Shown here: positions 6,403 to 40,932 of the stretch, one piece after another
Layout: each line of letters opens with the position of its first letter
Position numbering within the stretch: position 1 is the stretch's first letter
Program-made: the position numbers and the translations under genes
Notes under the pieces: generated by a model
What the model was told of the DNA's origin: nothing
The model's database searches: none
What the model saw: the letters and a program-made list of their open reading frames with translations, nothing else
Source: Guillardia theta CCMP2712
Taxonomy: Eukaryota > Protista > Cryptophyta
Length of the DNA: 56,548 nt
Reading direction: 5' to 3'
Assembly: GCF_000315625.1 (NCBI RefSeq)
Contig: NW_005434651.1
Location: forward strand, 1-56,548

Positions 6403-6502
6403 NNNNNNNNNNNNNNNNNNNNNNNNNNNNNNNNNNNNNNNNNNNNNNNNNNNNNNNNNNNNNNNNNNNNNNNNNNNNNNNNNNNNNNNNNNNNNNNNNN
6501 NN
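6403..6502. other. Assembly gap (100 N)
   Basis: Run of N characters. Confidence 1.
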
Positions 6503-6539
6503 TCTCCACCTACCCCACCCTCTGTTCTCAACCTCCGCA

Positions 6540-9500
6540 ATGCCGTACAACTGCGACAAATGCCAGGCAAGGAGCAGCAGCGATGAGATGCTGTTACCTT
6601 GAGTTACATGTTTGATGATGGAGATGTTTCCTTTGCTCCCCCGCATCTGATCCTTCCATCATTCAACTCCTTTCTTGGCGGCTCCTTCACTTCCTCATAA
6701 CACTTTTTTGACCTTCTGACTTGTGTTTCTCCAGATCGTGATCGAAGATGATACCAACGACAGCTTAAAATGCGTAATTTGAATAGCTTCCAGTAGGCGT
6801 CACCTGACTTTGAGTGTTTTACGTTCTGCCGTGAATTGCAATGTTGTTATTCGGAAGGCGGTAAGCATCAGTCTGTGCAGCATATGCTCAGGGGACGATA
6901 GACTGACATGTATTTTGCAAATTCCTGGTTTTCCCTTGGTTGCATGGATTAAATTCGTCTTCATAGACTGTAAGTGTCATATCATATGATGCGCTCAGGG
7001 GATGATTGGCTGACATGTATTTTGCAAATCCCTGGTTTTTCCTTGCTTGCATGGATTAAATTCGTCTTCATAGGGAGTAAGTGTCATATCATAATGATGT
7101 GCTCAGGGAACGATTCGCTGACATGATTTTGCAAATCTGAATCGCTTTTTTATTCGGATGGATGTAATGGGGCTGGATAGACGGTAAGTGACGCTTATGA
7201 AATATGCTCTCAAGGGATGATTGGCTGACATTTCATTTTGCAAATTCTTTTGCTCTTGCTCGGATGGGTGCAACTTGGGCCCAATAGCATGTAAGTCGCA
7301 TATGCTACAATGCGGTCAGGGGACGATTGGACTGACAATTTTTGCTTTTTATTCCGGGTTTTTCATCGGATGGGTTGTTGATTTTTCCGGTCAGCCGGTA
7401 AGCGATGATTATGAAATATGCGGTCAGAGGATGATTGGACTGACATTTTCGTTTGTGTATATGTCGGTATTTGCTCGAATGTACTGTGGATGGCGCGGTA
7501 TAGTCGGTAAGTGACGATGATGAAAGATGTGGTCAGGGAACGATTGGCTGACATGTGTTTTTCAATCTCATCGCTTTTTTTGCTGGGATGGATGGAATGG
7601 GGCTGGATAGGTTGTAAGTGACGAATATGAAATGATGCACTCAGGGATCGATTGGATTGATACTCTACAATAGGCTACTTTTCAAGCTGGAGCCGAAGGA
7701 AAGTGCAAGATCTGTTCGAAGCTTGAAAAAGATCATCATGGATCTTCCAAGTACTGCTACGTAAGGAACTGTTCGTTCAGGGGTTGATTGGACTGACATG
7801 TATTTTGCAAATTCCTGGTTTTTCCTTGCTTGCATGGATTAAATTCGTCTTCATAGGGAGTAAGTGTCATATCATATGATGCGGTCAGGAAACGATTGGG
7901 CTGACATAGTCTTGTGTTTTTTCAATTTCTACTGTTTCATGGCTTGTTTGGATTGAATCTTTCTTCAAAGGGAGTAAGTAGCATATGCAATGATGCGGTC
8001 AGGGAACGATAGGCTGACATGTATTTTGCAAATCCCTGGTTTTTCCTTGCTTACATGGATTAAATTCGTCTTTATAGCGCGTAAGTGTCATATCATATGA
8101 TGCGCTCAGAGAATGATTGGCTGACATGTATTTTGCCGTTCGGGTCTTTGCTGGCATGCTCTGGATTGCGGCTGTTTTTTTTCTAGTGCTGCGTTTGCTA
8201 CTACGACGATGAATCTGAAGATCGAAGGCAAGAACGCATGTGCCAGCACTGCAAGGATCGACGTTCCTGCGTGCACAACCTTGAGCAAGATCTTGTATCG
8301 TCAAGACCCAGTAGGCAGGACGCCATCGCCAAGATCGAGAAGGTCCGCGAGCACGTCAACAACGTGGGGAAGCCATTTGCCCAGAGACTGGACCTAGTCA
8401 AGTGCCACTATATCTTCGGGATGCAAGAGATAGATACCTCTGCTGTCGAAGACGTGAAGCAGCTCCTGTCGGGCGGGGAGCTTGGGAGCTGCTACAACAG
8501 CGAGGAAGGCACGCTCAACATGTCTTTGCGGACAGATAGGATGAAACGATATGTGATACGAGACCTGAGGATGAAGAGCCTGCCTCGCTGGATCTCCGAG
8601 CTCGGCGTCGCTTTTAAAGTCATCGACGTGTCCGGTAACCCCAGCCTCTCCCGCCTTCCCTTGGACGAGCTCTGCAGCATGGAGTCTAGCCTGCAGGAGG
8701 TCAAGTGTAAGAGCTGCGTCAGCCTGCAGCTGCCTCCCCCTGAGATCGCCAGTCAGGGAGGGGCAGCTGCTTTCACGTACCTGCAGAGTGTCAAGAGAGA
8801 CAGCGAGGCGAACAAGCGGATCAACCTCATCCTCATAGGCAACGGAGAGGCAGGCAAGACGAGCGTGCTGAGAGCTCTGAGGTCAGACAAGGACAAGGCG
8901 GACAAGATCGAGGTAGACAGGAGGACGATCGGGATAGACCTGCACGAGTGGAAGCCTGATTACGCTGACGGGCTGACGTTTGACGTGATAGACTTCGGGG
9001 GGCAGCAGATCTACGCCAAGACCAACCAGTACTTCATCGTGAGGCGGGCCTTGTACCTGCTGGTTTGGAGCGTGAGGGTGAAGCGAGACAAAGAGAGCAA
9101 AGAGGATGGAGGGGGAGGCATGGAGGAGCTGAAGAAGATGATCTCGACATGGCTGCGAGCTACGCAAGCGCGAGTGCCGGGAGCGAGTGTGTTGCTCGTA
9201 GTAACGCACATCGATCTTGCCGGGGAGAGCGAGGTGACGGATCAGTGTGAGAAGGTGAAGGCATGTGTGGAAGAGGAGCTGAAGAAGATGGCAGAGGAGG
9301 AAGACGAGAACATCCTGCCGTTGCACGTTATCAATGGAGGCGAGAGCTTCCGGGTGAACTGTCTTGAGGGACAGGGAGTGAAGGAGCTGCGGCAATCTGT
9401 GTGCAAGACTGCAAAAGAGCTGCTGTGGTGGCAGGAAAAAATCCCTGGACCTTATCTGAGACTGAGAGAGGCTGTGGAGAAGCGTAAGTCAGAACCTGTC

Positions 9501-12113
9501 TCGTACGTCAAGGTAGAGGAGTACAAGGAGATGTTGAGAGAGTCAGGGGTCAACGAAAAGGAGCAAAAGGTGGCAACGAGCTTCTTGCACGACATGGGCG
9601 TGCTCAAGTACTTCGGTCATGAGCTGAGTGCGGATGAAAGCAAGAGAGACCAAGGCAAGTACTCCGTCGAGGACACGGTCTTTATCGATCCCGTGTGGAT
9701 GATCGACGTGTTCAAGGGCGTGATGCGACATGACTGGGAGCACCTACTCGACTGCTTCCAGCAGGACCCAACCAAGTCCAAGAAGACGAAGAAGCTGCTA
9801 CACCTGGGTATCATAGACGAGGACATGTTGGAGTACCTGTGGCCCCAGCAAGACAGCGACTTCTGGCGCAATGCGAAGACAGACAAGACATCAAGATCGG
9901 AAGAGGTAGGCTTCATCAAGCGCCATGTGGAGGTGCAGGAGGCGGTGGCTCTGCTTCGGGGCTGCGATCTGGCGCACTTCCTGGGCGTGGGGATGAAGGA
10001 CTTGAAGGATACAGACAACAAGAGCAGAGAGCTGCTGTGTCCCGGCATCATCCCGTCGTTCACGCATGAGCACAAGCGGGCAGTGACGGACAAGGACAAG
10101 CAGTCTCTATGCGCATCTGTGGAGTGCGAGTACAACATCTTCCCCGCAGGCTTCATCGACAGGCTGGTCGTGCTGTGCGCTGCTCGACACTTTGAGGTAG
10201 ACTGCAGCGGCTCTATGGCGGTGATGAAGGGCTGGGGCCGGACGCTGCTGGTGAGCTGGCGGGAAGACAATGACAAGCACGTGCTGAGAGCTGACGCGTC
10301 GACGAGGCAGCAGATCGAGAACTTGCAAGAGGACTTGAGGCGACTCGAGGCGTTCTTCCCGGGGATGAAGCGAAGGAGAAGCAACGAGGAGAGCTCAGGC
10401 AAGGAGGCCGTGCAGGTTGGGATCTTCACGCAAGGAGAGAGGTCAAGAGCATGTGGGCTGGATATTGAAAGAAAGGTGAAGGAGCTTTACGAGGCGGAGA
10501 ACCTCCCTCTAGGTCTTACTTGTCAGATTCATCCATGTGACGAACGTGGAGATGCTGGTGATGAATGTCTCGTGAACATCTTGTGTATATCGACAGAGTG
10601 TGTTGATGAGCAGGGAGCCATGCAAGGAGAAAGTAGCTTCAGCAAGCCATGGAACAGATTGACAGCTAGCAAAGCAATTATCATCCCCGTCGTATTGACA
10701 GACTACTACGACAAGCACATCAAGCCGAGGAACAGGTTCAACGAGTGGTGGCCGCAGGAGATACAAGGGATGGAGCGATACAGGATCTTCCATCAGTACA
10801 AGAAGAAAGATGAAGTATCGAAAGACAAAGTATCCGAATATGAAAAATCTATGCGAACGTTGTACGACGGCATCATCAAGAAGCTTCATCAGGGACGGGG
10901 AAGCTTCGAAGACTTGTACGATGTCACCAGTCAGAACGAGCTTCTGTGCCAAGCTTGCTTGCATGATAGGTCTGAGTCTCAACCTGCCTCACAAGGCGTT
11001 AGAGCCGTGGGCAGGTTCGATCCGTCGGAGATCAAGGAAGCACTGGACAAAGAAACCAATGGTATGACAGACATGCAGCAAGAGCTGGAGCAAGAAGATG
11101 TCATCAAACAAACGATCATGATCAAAGCAATCACTTGCACAAGGGGTCATACGACAACCGTGAAGGAGGTGCTGGCTTTCAATGACTCGAGCTCCCCGTG
11201 TCCGTCGTGCTTGAAGGACAAGAGAGTCCCGCACTTCTTCAGCCGACCCACGTGCTTGAGCATGCTCGCTCGCGATCTAACGGCTAAGATTTACTGCAAT
11301 CAATGTCAGAGGGAGATGGACGTGCTGGACGTCACGCCGCCTCAGGTGTTCTTGAGCTACAATTGGGGGCACGACAACTCGACGCAGAAGATGGTGAGGG
11401 AGGTGAAGCGGCGGATCGAAGAGCAGACGAGCCTGCAGTGCTGGTTCGACGTGGAGGGAGGGATCGACCACGGGGAAGATCACATGCAGAAGATGGAGCA
11501 GGGAGTGTCTCGCTGCGAGGTGTTTGTGGTCTTCATGAGCGACAAGTACGTTAAGAGCGGCAACTGCAGGAGGGAGTTTGCTCGGGCGTGTAAGGCAGGG
11601 AAGTACATCATCCCTGTCTTGGTGCCGGTGCTGTATGAAGCAAGTCCAGACTCAAAGGACTTGGAGTCAGAGTCAGGCTGGAAGGGCGACAAGGAGGGTG
11701 AAGACTGGTGGAAGAGAATTGCGGAGCTAGAGGAGACAAGTGAAGCTGCCAAAGAGGTCAAGGTCGACTGGGAGTTTCTCGCGTCATTCTCGAAGCCCTT
11801 GAAGATTGAAGCGAAGAGGGAGCAGCAAGAACAACAGCAGAAAGAGAAGGACCATGGTGGTTTGCATGTGTCAGGGCTGGAGGCGCTGGTGGCAGCAGTG
11901 CAAGCGAGGGTTTACCGGGGAGGCGTCGTATTTCACGAGGTTGCTTGTTTCCTTGTGGTTGACATGGCCTTGACATGCGTGGGCCAGGTGGAGCACCCGT
12001 TTCTCAGGTCGTTACATCGTCAAAAGCGCCTGCTCGACAGCATTCTTGATCGTATCAGCCGGCTGCAGTCAAAGATACTGTTAGGGATTGACAACCCTGA
12101 TGATCTACCTTGA
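6540..12113 (+). CDS. ROCO-family GTPase with TIR domain: microexon-encoded Cys/His-rich N-terminus, LRR remnant, ROC, COR, Zn-finger-like region, TIR_2
   Basis: Main exon starts at 8187, in frame with ORF 8238-12113. It encodes an LRR-like stretch ending in the ROCO-typical LPPPEIASQGG, P-loop GNGEAGKTS, RTIGID, DFGGQ, THID, a COR region (FLHDMGVLKYF, VFIDPVWMIDVF), CxxC pairs, and TIR VFLSYNW..CWFD..FMSDKYVKSGNCRREF. Probable in-frame 48-nt intron at 11940-11987. Predicted upstream exons: 6540-6566 (tentative, GC donor), 6735-6773, eight 3-nt exons, 7674-7760, and three more 3-nt exons. Confidence 0.88.
6858..8186 (+). other. Array of eleven 3-nt microexons and one 87-nt exon separated by homologous introns
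   Basis: AG|NNN|GTAAG at GCG 6858-60, ACT 6967-69, GGA 7074-76, ACG 7181-83, CAT 7288-90, CCG 7395-97, TCG 7504-06, GTT 7611-13, GGA 7857-59, GGA 7971-73 and CGC 8078-80. The exon at 7674-7760 reads ATFQAGAEGKCKICSKLEKDHHGSSKYCY. All junctions are phase 0. Confidence 0.88.
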
Positions 12114-15880: not shown

Positions 15881-18800
15881 CTATGATTGTGCTTGCACAG
15901 CATCAATCATGAGTGCGATGGTCTCTGTGTTTACATGAGCAAGAAAGAAAAGGGTCATTCAAATGGCACCTGAGTCGGGGGTGACTTCTTCCTGCTTCAT
16001 CTCGTTGATCACCTTGCATAGGCTCAACATGCGCTACAAAAAGAAGAAAACAACCTTGAGAACTTCACTAAGTTTTCGCTGTCCCGACAAGATGGAAATG
16101 ATGAGGTTATACGTAACAATATTCGCTCGTACTCCCGATGTCTGTTCGACTTGTAAAACACTCGAGATTGTAGGTCGACGTGATGAGGAATGAACGAAAA
16201 GTAGAAAAGCAATGGGTAATGAAAAGGGAGATTAGAACCTTCATCCCCTTGTAGACATCAAAAGCTTTCTGATAGTTTGACGATTTGACACAAGCCGAAA
16301 TGAGAGAGTTGTAAGCTTGCACGCTTGGGGTGTGCCCAGCCATCCTGATCAAGATCTTTTCAGTTTTGATCCTTGCAAGAGTTTAGCAATGGGATAGAAT
16401 GGAGAGCGAGCAAGAATAACGACGAAGGTCCAAAAACCGAAAAGGAAAGGGAATCATCAGCAAAAAAAAACGACCTCATGTCTACCATAACATCGATCGC
16501 TCTTCTCCAATCGCCTCCTTCCTCTGCTGCCATCGAAAGTGCGTTGAAAGTGGACAGCGACGGTCTTATTCTTTGCAGCTGCATCTGGCTGTAGACCTAA
16601 CGTATGTGTCATTCAAAACATGGCAAGTGGGAGATTGACAAGAGAACTCAGATAGAAGCTCAACAATCATCACCTCGAACGCTTTCTGCCACTCGTGGCT
16701 CCTGACACATGTCTTGATCAATGTGTTGAAAGTTTGTAAGTTTGCTCTGAAGCCATACTCCTGTGTCAAAGTCAGCTCTTGCTCTCACAATGCCACAGTC
16801 GTCATCATCATTCATCTTCCGCCCCGTGCCCCTTCTGTCCTCAACTTCAAGCAATTGACCTGGAGGAGCCCGACGACTTGAAAGGCGCAGGTTGAGTTCC
16901 CGACGACCTCGCATGTGCCGAGGAGGACGTTGAAGGTGACAAGGTTGGGGGTCACATGGTCTTCCTTCATCAATTCGAGCACCCTAAAGGCGCGATCGAG
17001 ATCTCTTGCAACCTGTAGAGACACTTAGATGCGAAGAGGCTAACGAACGAGCAAGCAGACACAATCAACGAGGGAGTAAAGGCACAGCAAGCTCATAAGA
17101 CACTCGCACTATTTGACAAGCGAAAGGCAGGAAAAAAGGTCCGGGGTGTGAATCAAACGAGCCTCTTATAGTCTGCCAAGGGCTGCTGTAGACCGAAAGC
17201 ACAGGGGAGAGAGGGCAAGAGGAACTAGAGTAGGAGAATAGCGATGTAGCACCTTGCAGGCGTGGATGAGGGCGGTGAACATGATCACGTTCGGCTTGAT
17301 TCCATCTCGCTTGCACTCGTCGAGGATGCGGAACGCGTCATCGAGGCGACCGGCTTGACCGCAAACATGTACGACTGCTGAGTACATGCGAATGTTCAGC
17401 TGGATCCCTGCGTCTTGCATCCACTCCAACACATCCATAGCCTGCTCCCACTGCGACAAGTCACAGTCGATCAGGAAAGGTGGAGAGATGGAGAGATAGA
17501 GAGGAATAGGAGAGGAGGAGGAGGGGAGAAGGAGTGCGGAAGGAGAAGTGCAAGAATGAAAGGCAGGAAGGCAAAAATAGAAGCAAGAGAAGAGGAGAGG
17601 AGAGGAGGAGAAAGTCAAGGAAAAGCACCTGCTTGCTATGCTGGCACACAGAAAGGAGAGCGGAGAAGGTCATGGGGTCAGGAGGGATCTCTTTGCGGAT
17701 CATCTCGAGGAAGAGATCAAAAGCAGTCACCCAGTTGTCCTTGCTTCTGCAGCTTGCAATCATCGTGCTGTATGTTACCACGTTAGGACTGATGCCCTGG
17801 GCCTGCATGTCGTCAAAGAAAGCGAAAGCTTGAGAGAAGTTGTTGGCTCGCAGGCATGCAAAGATCAGCGAGTTGTAAGTGATCACGTTGGGCATGACTT
17901 GTCTTTCCATCATCTTCTCGTACATCTCAATTGCAAGGCTGTACTTTCTTGTCTTGGCGAAAGTACTGATGAGCGTCGAGTAGGTAATCACATCTGTGAT
18001 CACGTGTTGGTCTTCTATCTCGAACAAGATGTCGTAACTTTCCTTCCACTTGCCCATCTCCATGTACACACCCAGCAGAGAATTGTAGGTCACAATGTCC
18101 GGCCTCAGCCCGGCCGCCTTTGCCTCTGCAAAGAGAATCTGGGCAATAGTCAAGGTGTTCTGCCGCTTGCGAGACATCAGAGAGGTTGCGAGTGAGTTCT
18201 TGCAAACAGCGATGAGAGCGTTGAAGGTGTAGATGTTGGGCGAGACGTTCTTGGCGTCCATCTCCTCCTTCAGTGCAAAAGCTTCATCGTACTTGCCACA
18301 GCGATCGCAGAGGGAGATTAAGGTGGAGAAGGTAAAAACATCTCGCTCAATCTGATCTTCGCTCATCATCTCTAAGATCGCAACTCCACTCTCCCAGTCG
18401 CACTGCCGCTGACAGGCAGCGAGGGCTGTGTTGAAGGAGACAATGTCGGGTGAGACCTTCTCTCTCATTCGCTTTAGCATCACGAAGACATTCTGAATAT
18501 CTGGGCTGTGGCGGAGAGCAGATAACACGGTGTTGTATGAGACAATGTCCGGCTCCACTCCATCCTTCTCCATGATGTTGAGGATCGCAACTGCTTCTCT
18601 CCAATCCCCCATCCTCTCTAGGGCTCGGATGCAAGCATTGAAAGGGAGGGAGGAGAGTTTTATCTTTCTCCTTTCGCTTTCTTCTCTCATCCATCGAAGA
18701 ACATCTGCAACCATCATCTTCTTGTGCTTCCTCCCGATCTCAACGATAAGCCTCGACACCAACTTCTCATCCCACATCATGCTCGACAAGACCTTCTTCA

Positions 18801-19419
18801 CCTTGTCCGATGACTGCTCGCTGCTCAAGAGCTTATCGACGTAACTCTTGATGTTATGGTGCTGCCTTGGAGTTTGCGTGCTCATCCTCAAACCATTTTG
18901 CTTCATTTCAACATCAGTCCATGTGTTGCTTTGCTGCCTCCCAGCGGTGTGACTCTTCCAACTGTATCTTCGTCTTGTAAGTCGAGAAGGAGATGTCATC
19001 CGTTTCTCCGACACTCTTTCAGACGTTAGGAAAGAAGAGCTTTCATCCACAGATTCACTCACAAATCGATCCACCTTCTTCGACCTCGTATGGTTTGTTT
19101 TCCCTCGAGAAAAACTTCGAGATTGTTCACTTTGAGGAGACTGATAGTTTGTCTTAAATTCTGAGATGTTTGCCGGGTTGAAATGTCTTGGAGACCTTGA
19201 AAGAGCAAGGGAAAGGAAAAACTGCTGTGCAAGATTGCTCTTTTGAGGAACACGACATCTTGAGACTGGAAGCTTGTCCTGCGTCGGAAAAAGTGGACAA
19301 AAGATCCTTGACGTAGAGGGAAAACCTTTGTGATGAATTTGAATAAAACTATGAACAACTGTGCGGGATTGAAAAATAATAGAACAAAAAATAAAACTAA
19401 GAAGGCTGAACGATTTCAT
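15881..19419 (-). CDS. P-type pentatricopeptide repeat protein with a bipartite (signal + transit-like) leader; multi-exon at the 3' end
   Basis: More than 15 tandem 35-aa PPR motifs (PDIVSYNTVLSAL, PNVITYNSLIFAC, PNVVTYSTMIASC, PNLVTFNVLL); hydrophobic N-terminus ending ..VHS-F. Confidence 0.92.
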
Positions 19420-20265
19420 TGCTGGTTTGACTCAGATCCTTGAGACTGATCTTGAGTTTCTATCTCCCGCCTGGCGCAAACCGTTGAGTCACCCGTGAAT
19501 TCGATAGCTCATCGGTCAATGACCATGTGGAACTATCGCAATACCCTCTTCTTGCTGTTAGGAGAATTTTATCGTCTTCCAATGAACCAAATCATTCTAG
19601 CACCATCCCTCATCTGATAGAGAAATCAATTTCCTTCTGTGAAAGCCAAACACATCAGAATCATTTACACAAGCATCATTTACACGCTTAAATAATTTTA
19701 AGGCATCAATTGGGTTCAACAAGACAACTCGCCGTTCTCAGATCTGACCTAATCTTTGCCAACTATTCTACACTACGATATAGACGGATTGCATTGTCGG
19801 ATCGTCTCTAAACGTCTTCATCTCAACGAAATTTTTGCTCTCTGGTATTCGCAAACAACTCACAAATCAACTCACAAATCTATTGGCCAGATAAGAGTTT
19901 AGTGCTTAGGTCTCTGAGACCAACATAGTACAACATAGCTCATCTGAATTTTCCTCCTCTGTCTAGCCTTATTACAACCCTCTTGCTCTTCACTCAATTT
20001 CAGCTTCTACCGTAGCTTTTCGTTTTCAGGATGTTCACCTACATCCTCACCCAATCCACTTCCTTGTCCCTTCCCCTTCCCTTTCCCCTTCCCTTTCGCT
20101 CTCGTCCCATCAGTTGTCCGCATGCTCCCGTCCTCATGTGGCCGCCAAATTTAAAATTTAGTTTTATGAATTTACTCATCAATATTAAAACTACTTTTTA
20201 AAAATTCTCAAGAGACAGAATGAGCAGCAAGCGAAGAAGTAAATTGAGTCAGACAAAACAAGCAG

Positions 20266-21273
20266 ATAGATGAAGAAGACCAGCAGGTAGACGAAGAAGA
20301 CAGGCACGTAGACGAAGAAGACAGGCACGTAGACGAAGAAGACCAGCAGGTAGACGAAGAAGACAAGCAGGTAGACGAAGAAGACCAGCAGGTAGACGAA
20401 GAAGACCAGCAGGTAGACGAAGAAGACCAGCAGGTAGACGAAGAAGACCAGCAGGTAGACGAAGAAGACCAGCAGGTAGACGAAGAAGACAAGCAGGTAG
20501 ACGAAGAAGACAGGCACGTAGACGAAGAAGACCAGCAGGTAGACGAAGAAGACAAGCAGGTAGACGAAGAAGACCAGCAGGTAGACGAAGAAGACCAGCA
20601 GGTAGACGAAGAAGACAGGCACGTAGACGAAGAAGACCAGCAGGTAGACGAAGAAGACCAGCACGTAGACGAAGAAGACCAGCAGGTAGACGAAGAAGAC
20701 AGGCACGTAGACGAAGAAGACCAGCAGGTAGACGAAGAAGACCAGCAGGTAGACGAAGAAGACAGGCACGTAGACGAAGAAGACCAGCAGGTAGACGAAG
20801 AAGACAGGCACGTAGACGAAGAAGACCAGCAGGTAGACGAAGAAGACCAGCAGGTAGACGAAGAAGACCAGCAGGTAGACGAAGAAGACAAGCAGGTAGA
20901 CGAAGAAGACAAGCAGGTAGACGAAGAAGACCAGCAGGTAGACGAAGAAGACCAGCAGGTAGACGAAGAAGACCAGCAGGTAGACGAAGAAGACAGGCAC
21001 GTAGACGAAGAAGACCAGCAGGTAGACGAAGAAGACAAGCAGGTAGACGAAGAAGACCAGCAGGTAGACGAAGAAGACCAGCAGGTAGACGAAGAAGACC
21101 AGCAGGTAGACGAAGAAGACAGGCACGTAGACGAAGAAGACCAGCAGGTAGACGAAGAAGACAGGCACGTAGACGAAGAAGACAGGCACGTAGACGAAGA
21201 AGACCAGCAGGTAGACGAAGAAGACAGGCACGTAGACGAAGAAGACAGGCACGTAGACGAAGAAGACAAGCAG
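20266..21273. repeat. 21-bp minisatellite, 48 units (GTAGACGAAGAAGAC + CAGCAG / AGGCAC / AAGCAG)
   Basis: 1008 bp of exact 21-nt period with three interspersed variants and one hybrid CAGCAC unit. Confidence 0.97.
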
Positions 21274-21293
21274 GTTGAAATGAAGATAGCATC

Positions 21294-24200: not shown

Positions 24201-25597
24201 TGGGATATTCTAAAACCATTTTGTCCTCTTGCTGTTTCAACAAGATCGGAGAGAATTCAGAGATGACGAGGGTTTGATTGGAAGAGTCAGATATCCGGTC
24301 TAGGATGACATAGCCTTTGAGTGCAGCTGAACTTGACGGGGTGGCCAGCTGCTGACTGTGACCAAGCATGAACAAGTGATCGATCTCTTTGAATGCTTGT
24401 AACAGTCTTTGCAGGTCAATGTCATTTCTAACTTCATCCGCTGGGATATCCGGCTGCAAATACCGGTTACCACAACACTCCCCCATGCCAGGTACACCTG
24501 AATTCCTGCACACAGCAAGACATGCTCTATGAGTTGTCCAGGATACTGGCACTCCGTTGCAAGCAGCTTCATCAAAGCTGTTTTCTTCTTGTCTTTGCGT
24601 GTGAGGGATGATCCAGTGGACTCTCTCAATCCTCGACAGATGGATCTTGATCGCTCAATCGCCTTCACAAGTCGGTCGCAGCTCATCGGCTGAAACCCTC
24701 CTCCATCATCTATCAAGTATTTTGACTTGACCTCTACATGTCTACCATCTGGAGTCTCGTAGGAACGAAGCAAAGACAAAATGGTCATCTCATGATCGCA
24801 GAGAATGATGTTGCCGGCAGCGTAGAATTCTAGGATCAGATGGTTGGATCTGATGCAGATCAATTACGATATGAAATGAGCATTTATAACAACCTGTTTC
24901 CCAGTCCAAAAGTCATCTGCAAGACCCTATCCTTCCCGACCTAGGAGAATCAAAGTCACAACAACTGCATCCATCCTGTTTTACATGATTCGACCTGCCT
25001 GACATCGTTCAAGAACTGTCCTCGGATATGCTTCCTGATCTTCGTCGCAAAGTTGGATGGGCGGGATGCAGTTGCTCGATGGAAACGAGAGGTGTGCAAT
25101 CGACTTCCACTTTCAATCACCACAGAGATCCTTTGACTGCTACCATTGACGTGTAGCGCATCTGCCGACATTGGGAGAGTCTGACTCTCCTTCAATGCAC
25201 AGCTAGCGCCTAGCCTAATCTCAAGCGTCCTTGCATTGATGTCGTAGATGTTTGCAACCCTGGTGCCAATTAGGTTTCTCAATATTCTCGTTTCGACCGA
25301 GAGATCTAAAGAAGACATTCGCATCTTAGTGCTGTCACTTGCTCTGGTCGTGATGGTGCTGAGGTTTGTCTGTTGGAGCATCTCATACGCGTCTGCTGTG
25401 TTCTCGTTGCACTCCTCTGCTACCGCATCACTACATGCCTCAGAACATCCTCCTCGCAATGTCGAGACCCATTGAGCGGAAGGAATGCGACGTGTTAGGT
25501 CGGGACTGGCCAGCCTGCTGCCGGCAGGTTTGGTGATGACGAAGAGGATATGAATAAGCGTCAATTGAAAGCATCTTGACTGCGATCGTGACATCAT
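21294..25597 (-). CDS. NEMF: NEMF/Rqc2 (NFACT) ribosome quality-control protein with an N-terminal signal peptide and LRGG leader; multi-exon, 3' end uncertain
   Basis: RMSSLDL..LIGTRVANIYD, VIESGSRLHTS, SNFATKIRKHIRG, HLILEFYAAGNIILCD, FEKFFWFISS, IAGKDAQQNELLVKR, HGASSV, SGEYLSKGGFVIRGKKNF. Confidence 0.85.
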
Positions 25598-26208
25598 TAC
25601 ATCTCTTGAAGTTTCCTGTGATACTCTCTGGCCCTTCTTTCCACCTTCGCCCCTCCTCTCATCCCAGTTTGAACAACGAGATGCTCTTCGTCGACGTCTC
25701 CTCAAAGTTTTCTCATTGATGCCTCTCACCTTTCCCACATATTCCCCCTTCTTTTCTCTCTCACTCCCACTCCTCCTCCTTCCTCCCTCTTCCCCTCATC
25801 TCTCCTGTGCACCAATGCGTCCAATCATGGTTCTTGTGCGTTTTCATTGGGTAGAGGGGTACTAAGGCTCTTCTAAAGAGGGGTGGAGCAAAGGAGAACG
25901 TAGGGGTGGACAACATAATTGGCGGAATTGAGAGGGTGGGGCAGGGGAAGAGTGGAATGCAAGATCTTCAGCAAGATGACGACTGAAGGTGAGATGCGAG
26001 GAGAGATGAAACGAGGAGAGGAGACGACGACGCAGGAGGAGGAGGAGGAGGAGGAGAAGAAGAAGATGATGATGAGGAGGAGGAGGAGGAGGAGGAGGAC
26101 GAGGACGAGGACGAATTCTATGGTGGTCATGAAGAATCCGAGACTCTGAATTGCAATCAGGGAGCTAGAGAGATCAAGCGTGTGCGAGTGTAGCATACTA
26201 TTCCCACC

Positions 26209-33955: not shown

Positions 33956-34333
33956 TTTCATGTCAAGGGTCTTTGGGAACATTTCATGTCAAGGGTCTTT
34001 GGGAACATTTCATGTCAAGGGTCTTTGGGAACATTTCATGTCAAGGGTCTTTGGGAACATTTCATGTCAAGGGTCTTTGGGAACATTTCATGTCAAGGGT
34101 CTTTGGGAACATTTCATGTCAAGGGTCTTTGGGAACATTTCATGTCAAGGGTCTTTGGGAACATTTCATGTCAAGGGTCTTTGGGAACATTTCATGTCAA
34201 GGGTCTTTGGGAACATTTCATGTCAAGGGTCTTTGGGAACATTTCATGTCAAGGGTCTTTGGGAACATTTCATGTCAAGGGTCTTTGGGAACATTTCATA
34301 TCAAGGGTCTTTGGGAACATTTCATGTCAAGGG
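33956..34333 (+). repeat. 26-bp tandem repeat, ~14.5 copies (TTTCATGTCAAGGGTCTTTGGGAACA)
   Basis: Near-perfect repeat with a single variant copy; it ends 10 nt before the ATG at 34343. Confidence 0.97.
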
Positions 34334-40780: not shown

Positions 40781-40932
40781 TGTTGAGTAAGTATTAAAGT
40801 TTAACTGAATCTCTGTCTTGTTGAGTAAGTATTAAAGTTTAACTGAATCTCTGTCTTGTTGAGTAAGTATTAAAGTTTAACTGAATCTCTGTCTTGTTGA
40901 GTAAGTATTAAAGTTTAACTGAATCTCTGTCT
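40781..40932 (+). repeat. 38-bp tandem repeat x4 (TGTTGAGTAAGTATTAAAGTTTAACTGAATCTCTGTCT)
   Basis: Four exact copies. Confidence 0.95.

Follow-up and report, generated by a model that had tools for sequence, protein, structure and literature searches.

Steric limits on short exons have been described (Black 1991; Dominski & Kole 1991, both as cited in PMC4674806), and we examined a gene of the cryptophyte alga Guillardia theta that carries a series of exons only three nucleotides (nt) long. The gene lies in a 56,548-nt stretch of strain CCMP2712 (contig NW_005434651.1, the whole of which we call the window), where we found the 5' part of a Roc-COR-TIR gene that belongs to a receptor-like gene family. 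Positions 6774–8186 hold 13 introns between eleven 3-nt exons (hereafter microexons), one 87-nt exon and one terminal exon of 3.9 kilobases (kb). The microexons read, in order, GCG ACT GGA ACG CAT CCG TCG GTT, then GGA GGA CGC; every junction of the array is in phase 0, and the N-terminal linker residues of this gene are encoded at one codon per exon. The region is a tandem repeat with a period of 107. We consider it likely that the introns before these exons use a branch point placed unusually far from the acceptor.

The 3-nt exons of the window gene are spliced into mRNA. RNA-like runs of two studies, carrying two organism labels, provided contigs that were placed on positions 6503–8700, and the evidence consists of these assembled contigs (five raw reads were placed). 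Taken together, contigs from the two studies contained all eleven triplets of the window gene in the correct order. A single contig joined 6860 to 7674 with exactly seven triplets between them (ACT GGA ACG CAT CCG TCG GTT), and a second (X2) retained intron 7077–7180 and then ran through ACG and CAT CCG TCG GTT into the 87-nt exon, while in both runs there were contigs in which 7761 was joined to 8187 and the intervening letters were those of GGA GGA CGC. Judging from the contigs, the microexons appear to be constitutive. One loose contig end consisted of seven consecutive triplets of a paralogue locus, L001 (CGG CGG AAT GAT GGG TAT CTG), followed by the 81-nt exon of that locus; because junctions of the window gene and of L001 were found in the same RNA run, both belong to one genome. 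Other loose ends on 6503–8700 carried series of triplets that are absent from all five arrays parsed here, among them GCG GGG CAT TGG TTT TCG GAA CAC TTC TCG TAT AAA CCG GGA TGC, and GTT TAT GCG AAT TAT followed by the long exon, so that further expressed array-bearing paralogues exist.

An initial annotation, made from the sequence alone, had described the array introns as sharing a GTAAG donor, a CTGAC some 30–45 nt past it and a T/G-rich tail of about 50–65 nt that is free of AG up to the acceptor. The donor is indeed GTAAG in 12 of the 13 introns, the first (6774–6857) reading GTAAT instead, and CTGAC was found 31–43 nt in from the donor in all 12 long introns. From its A to the intron end there are 50 nt in intron 6774–6857, 59–60 nt in nine introns, 62 nt in intron 8081–8186 and 66 nt in intron 7860–7970, and the tails are composed of 45% T and 22% G. 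We counted two AGs in the 678 nt that these tails add up to, against 24.7 expected (GA: 24 against 24.7), and none of 20,000 shuffles had two or fewer. The two exceptions that had been named were exact, namely a GAG in 6774–6857 and a TAG in 7860–7970, both no more than 8 nt past CTGAC. The altered reading that had been pointed out at the place where an ordinary intron would end, TTTTGCAAAT, occurs in six of the 12 window tails, and the spacers are as divergent as had been said, with a median identity of 0.60 against 0.54 for shuffles (long-form tails of five arrays).

An array of this kind was also found in each of three paralogue loci (L001–L003), immediately ahead of the annotated long exon. 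L001:12400–15929 holds a second gene (L001b) that shares the short first exon, the GC-AG intron and an array of the same intron family but has another C-terminal part, which is coiled-coil-like; more than one type of gene therefore carries the N-terminal array module. We parsed 79 introns in five arrays (the window, L001, L001b, L002 and L003), those of L002, L003 and L001b by pattern and homology, with RNA support covering the window gene and L001. These introns comprise 69 before 3-nt exons, five before exons of 81–87 nt (these introns being 53–60 nt long) and five before the long terminal exon. All but one of the 69 introns preceding microexons (68/69) are of the long form, with a median length of 104 nt. 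The homologous branch position reads CTGAC in 62 of the 79 introns, the rest showing TTGAC, CTAAC, CTTAC, CTCAC, CTGAT, CTGAA and similar motifs, and in the 69 introns that precede microexons the branch A lies a median of 59 nt from the intron end (interquartile range 58–62, range 44–114, one outlier at 26). Donors after the microexons are strong (GTAAGT in 38, GTGAGT in nine and GTAAGC in eight of 68 units); for comparison, the donors of a proteasome gene include GTTGGT and GTTGAG. There was no stop codon among the 69 three-base exons of the five arrays, against about three expected by chance (P ~0.04), which fits a coding role. We also observed a 165-nt intron in L001 (3479–3643) that contains CTGAC twice (with the A at -114 and at -63), is free of AG over 117 nt and looks like two fused units whose intervening microexon and donor have been lost.

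The tails exclude AG far more strictly than their composition predicts. For the whole family we defined the tail as running from 9 nt past the branch A to the acceptor, which gave 3,413 nt in 68 long introns before 3-nt exons. These contained four AGs against 153.5 expected (observed/expected 0.03) and 213 GAs (1.39), a depletion far beyond the base-compositional expectation with which the initial annotation had wanted it compared. The depletion extends over the two halves of the tail (two AGs against 75 expected, and three against 90), whereas the 5' part of the same introns is about normal, with 130 AGs against 181 expected (0.72). Counted back from the acceptor, the AG-free stretch in the 69 introns preceding microexons has a median of about 70 nt. 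The four deeper AGs are all GAG, the poorest acceptor context, two of them lying 4 and 9 nt from the acceptor, and seven more AGs occur 3–6 nt past the branch A; AGs close behind the branch and closely spaced competing AGs are known exceptions in scanning (PMC1431707). Outside the arrays, the observed/expected ratio of AG is 1.2–1.35, and only 29 of 771 composition-matched 50-nt windows (3.8%) are free of AG. When the tails were reduced to 17 representatives (single-linkage clustering, 70%), two AGs remained against 44 expected (P = 7e-17). Because the depletion survives clustering, the matched background and the comparison of halves, the data support selection on the AG-free tail beyond composition or shared descent, in agreement with the earlier suggestion that the array is under splicing selection. 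A shortage of TA in the tails was rejected as a signal, as the genome-wide observed/expected ratio of TA is also about 0.45.

We assessed where the branch point is likely to lie by comparing motif positions (counted from the intron end) with those of ordinary introns. YTRAY with its A at -41 to -85 is present in 60 of the 68 units, and the stricter CTRAC at the same distance in 56 of the 68 long forms, while YTRAY with its A at -8 to -40 is present in only 17 of 68, at the level of shuffles (18 against 17.6 expected). This distribution supports CTGAC as the sole consensus branch motif in most long introns. A T-tract follows it directly (49% T and 64% pyrimidine over the 25 nt past the A), whereas the last 25 nt of the long introns have 37% G and 44% pyrimidine, with no pyrimidine tract at the acceptor, and the depletion of AG begins immediately behind CTGAC. 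As controls we used five ordinary introns, four of them from the proteasome alpha-7 gene in L002 (located by aligning a transcript-derived protein of Hanusia phi) and the fifth the RNA-supported GC-AG intron; all five have an explicit CTGAC or TTGAC with the A at -11 to -15. Ordinary gene models rebuilt from gene span and product length, or from joined long open frames, gave many equally valid solutions and were dropped, and the distant paralogue locus L004, which has no array, was unused as a control because the coordinates of its single intron are inexact. Taking together the distribution of the motif, the position of the T-tract, the onset of the depletion and the ordinary-intron controls, we favour the distant CTGAC as the branch site used in the long introns.

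The arrays contain their own contrast to the long form. Six array introns are of a short form (the five before 81–87-nt exons and the terminal intron of L003), 53–60 nt long with the A at -12 or -13, so that the median branch-to-acceptor distance of 59 nt compares with 12–13 nt in these six and with 11–15 nt in the small control of five ordinary introns. The 60-nt intron before the 87-nt exon of the window (7614–7673) lacks the spacer, as had been noted, having TTGAT at the homologous place with the A 13 nt from the end, and in this it resembles the ordinary introns. The initial annotation had added the caveat that the last intron (8081–8186) keeps the spacer ahead of a long exon; it does, but the point is softened by the ordinary, pyrimidine-rich end of that intron (75% pyrimidine) and by its tailless counterpart in L003. 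Normal pyrimidine tracts (70–75%) are found in three of the four long-form terminal introns, and that of L001 has a second CTGAT at -12. In L003 the terminal intron is a 53-nt short form that has lost the tail, which is therefore dispensable before a long exon.

The overall layout of a long-form intron is thus a near-perfect donor (GTAAGT or GTGAGT), CTGAC, the consensus branch motif of this genome, about 45 nt on, a T-rich tract of about 25 nt and a G-rich tail, with the branch A about 59 nt from the acceptor and the next donor three bases beyond the acceptor. The tail carries conserved G-rich blocks with the consensus CGGATGGG ... GGGGCTGGATAG, and the acceptor is usually TAG; with its T-tract at the branch and its conserved G-rich acceptor end, the tail is more than a neutral ruler. 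In 19 of 68 tails, TT[GT]CAA rather than CAG stands where an ordinary intron would end. RNAalifold, run on 30 units, predicted no pairs that would indicate conserved RNA structure across the tail, and the folding energy of the spacer equals that of shuffles (z = 0.04), giving no sign of a structure that shortens the distance or of selected openness. We further observed a likeness between the block at the acceptor end, GGCTGGATAG, and the branch module found in the same intron, GGCTGACAT(G) (window 6903–8186 and L001–L003); a partial duplication within the intron may have given rise to the long form.

All features of the window gene lie on the + strand and, unless stated otherwise, are supported by both contigs and sequence. 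Exon 1 (6540–6566), identified from the sequence, opens with the ATG at 6540 and ends in CAG; one contig (X1) links it to 6735 with eight variant letters and is therefore probably derived from a paralogue. An assembly gap of 100 N (6403–6502) lies 38 nt upstream of this ATG, so that the promoter and the 5' untranslated region are incomplete. The first intron (6567–6734) is of the GC-AG type and has the ordinary architecture, with CTGAC at 6716–6720, the A 15 nt from the end and 80% pyrimidine in the last 20 nt, and exon 2 (6735–6773; 39 nt) is in phase 0. Array intron 1 (6774–6857), recognized from the sequence, stands outside the repeat family; it has the donor GTAAT and CTGAC at 6804–6808, the A being 50 nt from the end, and apart from a single GAG 6 nt past that A its tail is AG-free up to microexon GCG (6858–6860). 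Seven long-form introns follow: array intron 2 (6861–6966; CTGAC 6903–6907, A 60 nt from the end, AG-free tail) before ACT (6967–6969), intron 3 (6970–7073; CTGAC 7010–7014, A at 60 nt, AG-free tail) before GGA (7074–7076), intron 4 (7077–7180; CTGAC 7118–7122, A at 59 nt), the one kept in contig X2 with the microexons downstream joined, before ACG (7181–7183), intron 5 (7184–7287; CTGAC 7225–7229, A at 59 nt) before CAT (7288–7290), intron 6 (7291–7394; CTGAC 7332–7336, A at 59 nt) before CCG (7395–7397), intron 7 (7398–7503; CTGAC 7440–7444, A at 60 nt) before TCG (7504–7506) and intron 8 (7507–7610; CTGAC 7548–7552, A at 59 nt) before GTT (7611–7613). Array intron 9 (7614–7673), the short form, has the same 5' module, TTGAT at 7657–7661 and no tail, and precedes the ordinary 87-nt exon (7674–7760), which encodes a Cys/His-rich module. 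Beyond it lie the long-form introns 10 (7761–7856; CTGAC 7793–7797, A at 60 nt) before GGA (7857–7859), 11 (7860–7970; CTGAC 7901–7905, A at 66 nt, a single TAG 4 nt past the A and the rest of the tail AG-free) before GGA (7971–7973) and 12 (7974–8077; CTGAC 8014–8018, A at 60 nt) before CGC (8078–8080). The last intron (8081–8186), also long-form (CTGAC 8121–8125, A at 62 nt, pyrimidine-rich over its last 20 nt), leads into the long terminal exon (8187–12113), to which domain and protein matches assign Roc, COR-A and TIR domains; the top matches of its protein are three paralogues of G. theta CCMP2712 with 90, 78 and 66% identity.

The inclusion of the microexons, the architecture of their introns, its selective upkeep and the contrast with short-form and ordinary introns are probably best explained together by a distant branch point, scanning for the acceptor and steric spacing early in assembly, followed by stepwise catalysis; of these, the choice of branch site, the scanning, the steric role and the sequence in which introns leave are what we infer. 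The donor-to-branch unit of about 45 nt would resemble an ordinary G. theta intron whose acceptor has been shifted about 45 nt downstream. U2 and a pyrimidine-tract factor would assemble on the distant CTGAC and its T-tract, the first step would be offered an ordinary unit of 5' splice site and branch, and the acceptor would be picked only at step two, being whichever usable AG comes first beyond the branch, for which reason AG would be barred from the entire tail. An AG-independent first step and a linear search for the acceptor have been described (PMC1431707). Owing to the tail, some 62 nt would separate the branch complex and the next donor, compared with about 16 nt if the acceptor were ordinary, and the complexes on neighbouring introns could commit without collision, with the tail helping early assembly only. 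Room for U2 and U1 side by side, the purpose proposed in the initial annotation, is plausible, and an extended branch-to-acceptor region has likewise been proposed to give physical room at neural microexons (PMC12871342). The same three bases must serve once as the 3' exon and once as the 5' exon, so that the introns on either side cannot undergo catalysis together; removal has to be stepwise, and would usually take the downstream intron first. About five partly spliced contigs (assembled, among those listed) kept an upstream intron with the downstream microexons joined, and none showed the converse, which suggests that downstream introns are removed first. A downstream-first order has been reported for plant microexons (PMC8831610) and for SRRM4-dependent microexons (PMC10250204).

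Several observations weigh against this explanation. The tail is kept in four of the five introns before the long terminal exon and so is not strictly bound to microexons, and all long-form introns descend from one cassette, whereby the link between tail and microexon is partly one of descent. Removal of the downstream intron first could itself relieve a steric clash without any tail. Two of the deeper GAGs, which occur in L002 and L001b (arrays parsed by pattern and homology) at 20 and 36 nt from the acceptor, do not fit as simple exceptions to scanning, and intron L001:12625–12687, parsed in the same way and placed before a putative microexon, is only 63 nt long with its A at -26. The ordinary-intron control is small (n = 5). 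Finally, a conserved A is present at -13/-14 in 71% of units, within TGAAT or TTGAT, where ordinary branch points lie.

That conserved A is central to an alternative in which the proximal site is the branch point, CTGAC is a relic of the ancestral short intron or only a competing site, and AG is avoided in the tail since occasional use of CTGAC would yield mis-spliced products. The A is followed by T in 75% of units, the place reads TTGATTG in nine of them, and the short-form intron 7614–7673 uses TTGAT at -13, all of which would suit such a site. Yet YTRAY within 40 nt of the acceptor is no more frequent than in shuffled sequence, many units have no YTNAY except the distal one, and the pyrimidine-rich stretch follows CTGAC and is missing behind the proximal A. 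Every ordinary intron checked has a clear CTGAC or TTGAC, and a depletion of AG that is complete from the distal motif on implies that use of the distal site is frequent enough to have consequences; we therefore regard proximal branching as quite improbable. That the whole pattern arises by chance or from the composition of a tandem repeat lying in a single large intron, with the 3-nt exons unused, is hardly credible. The repeat itself and the public gene models, which begin at the long exon, speak for this view, but it is refuted by spliced contigs that contain every triplet, and neither the loss of AG alongside an excess of GA nor the rarity of AG-free windows in the matched background agrees with it.

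A further alternative accepts the microexons and holds that the tail is baggage of a duplicating cassette (intron plus codon) or a platform for G-rich enhancers, without being a steric spacer. Introns would then be removed in strict order, each microexon being already fused to a long exon when its upstream intron is spliced, and the exclusion of AG would reflect an acceptor that moved downstream after the original AG was lost (TTTTGCAG to TTTTGCAA). This accords with the contigs that retain an upstream intron, with the conserved G-rich blocks at the acceptor end, with the tails that have TT[GT]CAA at the ordinary intron end and with the persistence of the tail ahead of the long exon in four of five genes; a G-rich intron enhancer of a vertebrate micro-exon is also cited in PMC4674806. 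Tail length is nevertheless tight (minimum 44 nt) despite a spacer sequence that is close to random, no RNA-verified or typical microexon intron is without the tail, and the introns that are short are the terminal one of L003 and all five before 81–87-nt exons, while the evidence on order comes from assembled contigs only. We consider this account unlikely, and the distant branch with early steric spacing remains our preferred explanation.

The principle behind such a distant branch is known, both from distant branch points with AG exclusion zones and from the extended region before neural microexons. Introns of the former kind (Gooding et al. 2006, PMC1431707; the scanning model of C. W. J. 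Smith) share with the G. theta arrays a long AG-free stretch before the exon, a consensus branch and pyrimidine tract at the 5' end of this zone, near-normal AG upstream of it and, for most of the exceptional AGs, a position just behind the branch or, as poor GAGs, near the acceptor. The human cases, however, span 100–400 nt, mostly beside alternative exons and with regulators between, whereas those in G. theta have a stereotyped distance of about 59 nt, up to about 20 tandem repeats, seemingly constitutive exons and a G-rich acceptor end, against a genome norm of 11–15 nt. Vertebrate neural microexons (PMC12871342; SRRM3/4-dependent, 10.1101/2024.09.17.613571) are likewise tiny; their donors are strong, their pyrimidine tract is shifted upstream and their branch-to-acceptor distance is longer, which has been read as room for spliceosome assembly (PMC12871342), and their downstream intron tends to go first (PMC10250204), as the G. 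theta contigs suggest. Their shift is modest (predicted medians of 45 against 34 nt), and they are single, alternative and dependent on SRRM3/4 and UGC motifs, whereas G. theta shows a four- to five-fold shift and tandem 3-nt exons, in a cryptophyte and with no tissue regulation implied.

Plant mini-exons, such as those of potato invertase and Arabidopsis APC11, are single exons, whereas those of G. theta form arrays. Inclusion of the constitutive 9-nt exon of potato invertase is reportedly tied to an upstream branchpoint and a U-rich tract (Simpson et al. 2002), and the spacing in the work of Simpson et al. from 2000 and 2002 is said to be about 50 nt. Ratchet points (AG|GTAAGT), found in long introns of Drosophila and vertebrates, are used in 5'-to-3' order, and what they leave in the mRNA is either nothing or a discarded exon. 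They resemble the arrays in that an acceptor and a strong donor are nearly juxtaposed, which forces stepwise removal, but in G. theta the exons are not of zero length, since three coding bases stay at each junction, and the contigs hint at the opposite order. Introners are repeated intron families known from Micromonas, fungi and dinoflagellates; with them the arrays share a sequence-related intron family multiplied in one genome, but over the roughly 120 kb examined (the window and L001–L004) the core motif was found only inside arrays of one gene family, without the dispersal of introners. For the 1-nt exon of APC11, a putative branch A lies 44 nt upstream and the downstream intron is removed first (PMC4674806). 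We found no paper that ties Guillardia to microexons, introners or such intron families, and a metagenome scan for the acceptor-microexon-donor motif returned 103 single matches and no arrays, which we take as chance hits. New here are the extreme, stereotyped and tandem form, with up to about 20 3-nt exons per gene that appear constitutive, its occurrence in a cryptophyte, the four- to five-fold shift in branch distance, and the short-form homologues as built-in controls.

Elsewhere in the window, a 21-nt tandem repeat with 48 copies and 92% matches (20261–21275) lies inside open frames of the minus strand, and further tandem arrays occur at 33956–34333 (26 nt, 14.5 copies) and 40781–40932 (38 nt, four identical copies). 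On the minus strand there are also an open reading frame for a pentatricopeptide-repeat protein (17461–19416) and an exon with a weak NFACT_N match (24956–25735).

The arrays bear directly on how the genes of this family are annotated. The public models of the paralogues (GUITHDRAFT_121310, _108245 and _116126, at L001:6001–9929, L002:6001–9813 and L003:6001–9957) begin at or inside the long exon and omit the start codon, the GC-AG intron, the Cys/His-rich exons and all upstream microexons, and so serve as a warning that public G. theta models of these genes miss the whole microexon-encoded N-terminus. Predicted proteins of Hanusia and G. theta start at or after the long exon too and are uninformative on the N-terminus. 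The lower size limit of an exon, and the way in which the spliceosome deals with an acceptor and a donor three bases apart, have been examined one exon at a time (c-src N1, troponin, potato invertase and neural microexons). In the window gene and its paralogues some 70 natural replicates of a single solution are available, and they belong to a distant lineage of eukaryotes. With an unusually explicit branch motif, a tight rule for the distance from the branch (about 59 nt to the acceptor, about 62 nt to the following donor) and short-form controls in the same genes, the arrays make steric spacing, first-AG scanning and the order of intron removal directly testable. More tentatively, and as a possibility that we would not yet call probable, the long-tailed intron and its codon may together form a self-duplicating splicing cassette that lengthens and varies N-terminal linkers residue by residue in an immune-receptor-like family (Roc-COR-TIR and at least one other C-terminal type). 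Since every exon has 3 nt and is in phase 0, any subset could be skipped in-frame, and a single gene could give combinatorial receptor isoforms. If this is true, it is the distant-branch architecture that would make the cassette spliceable, and hence able to spread.

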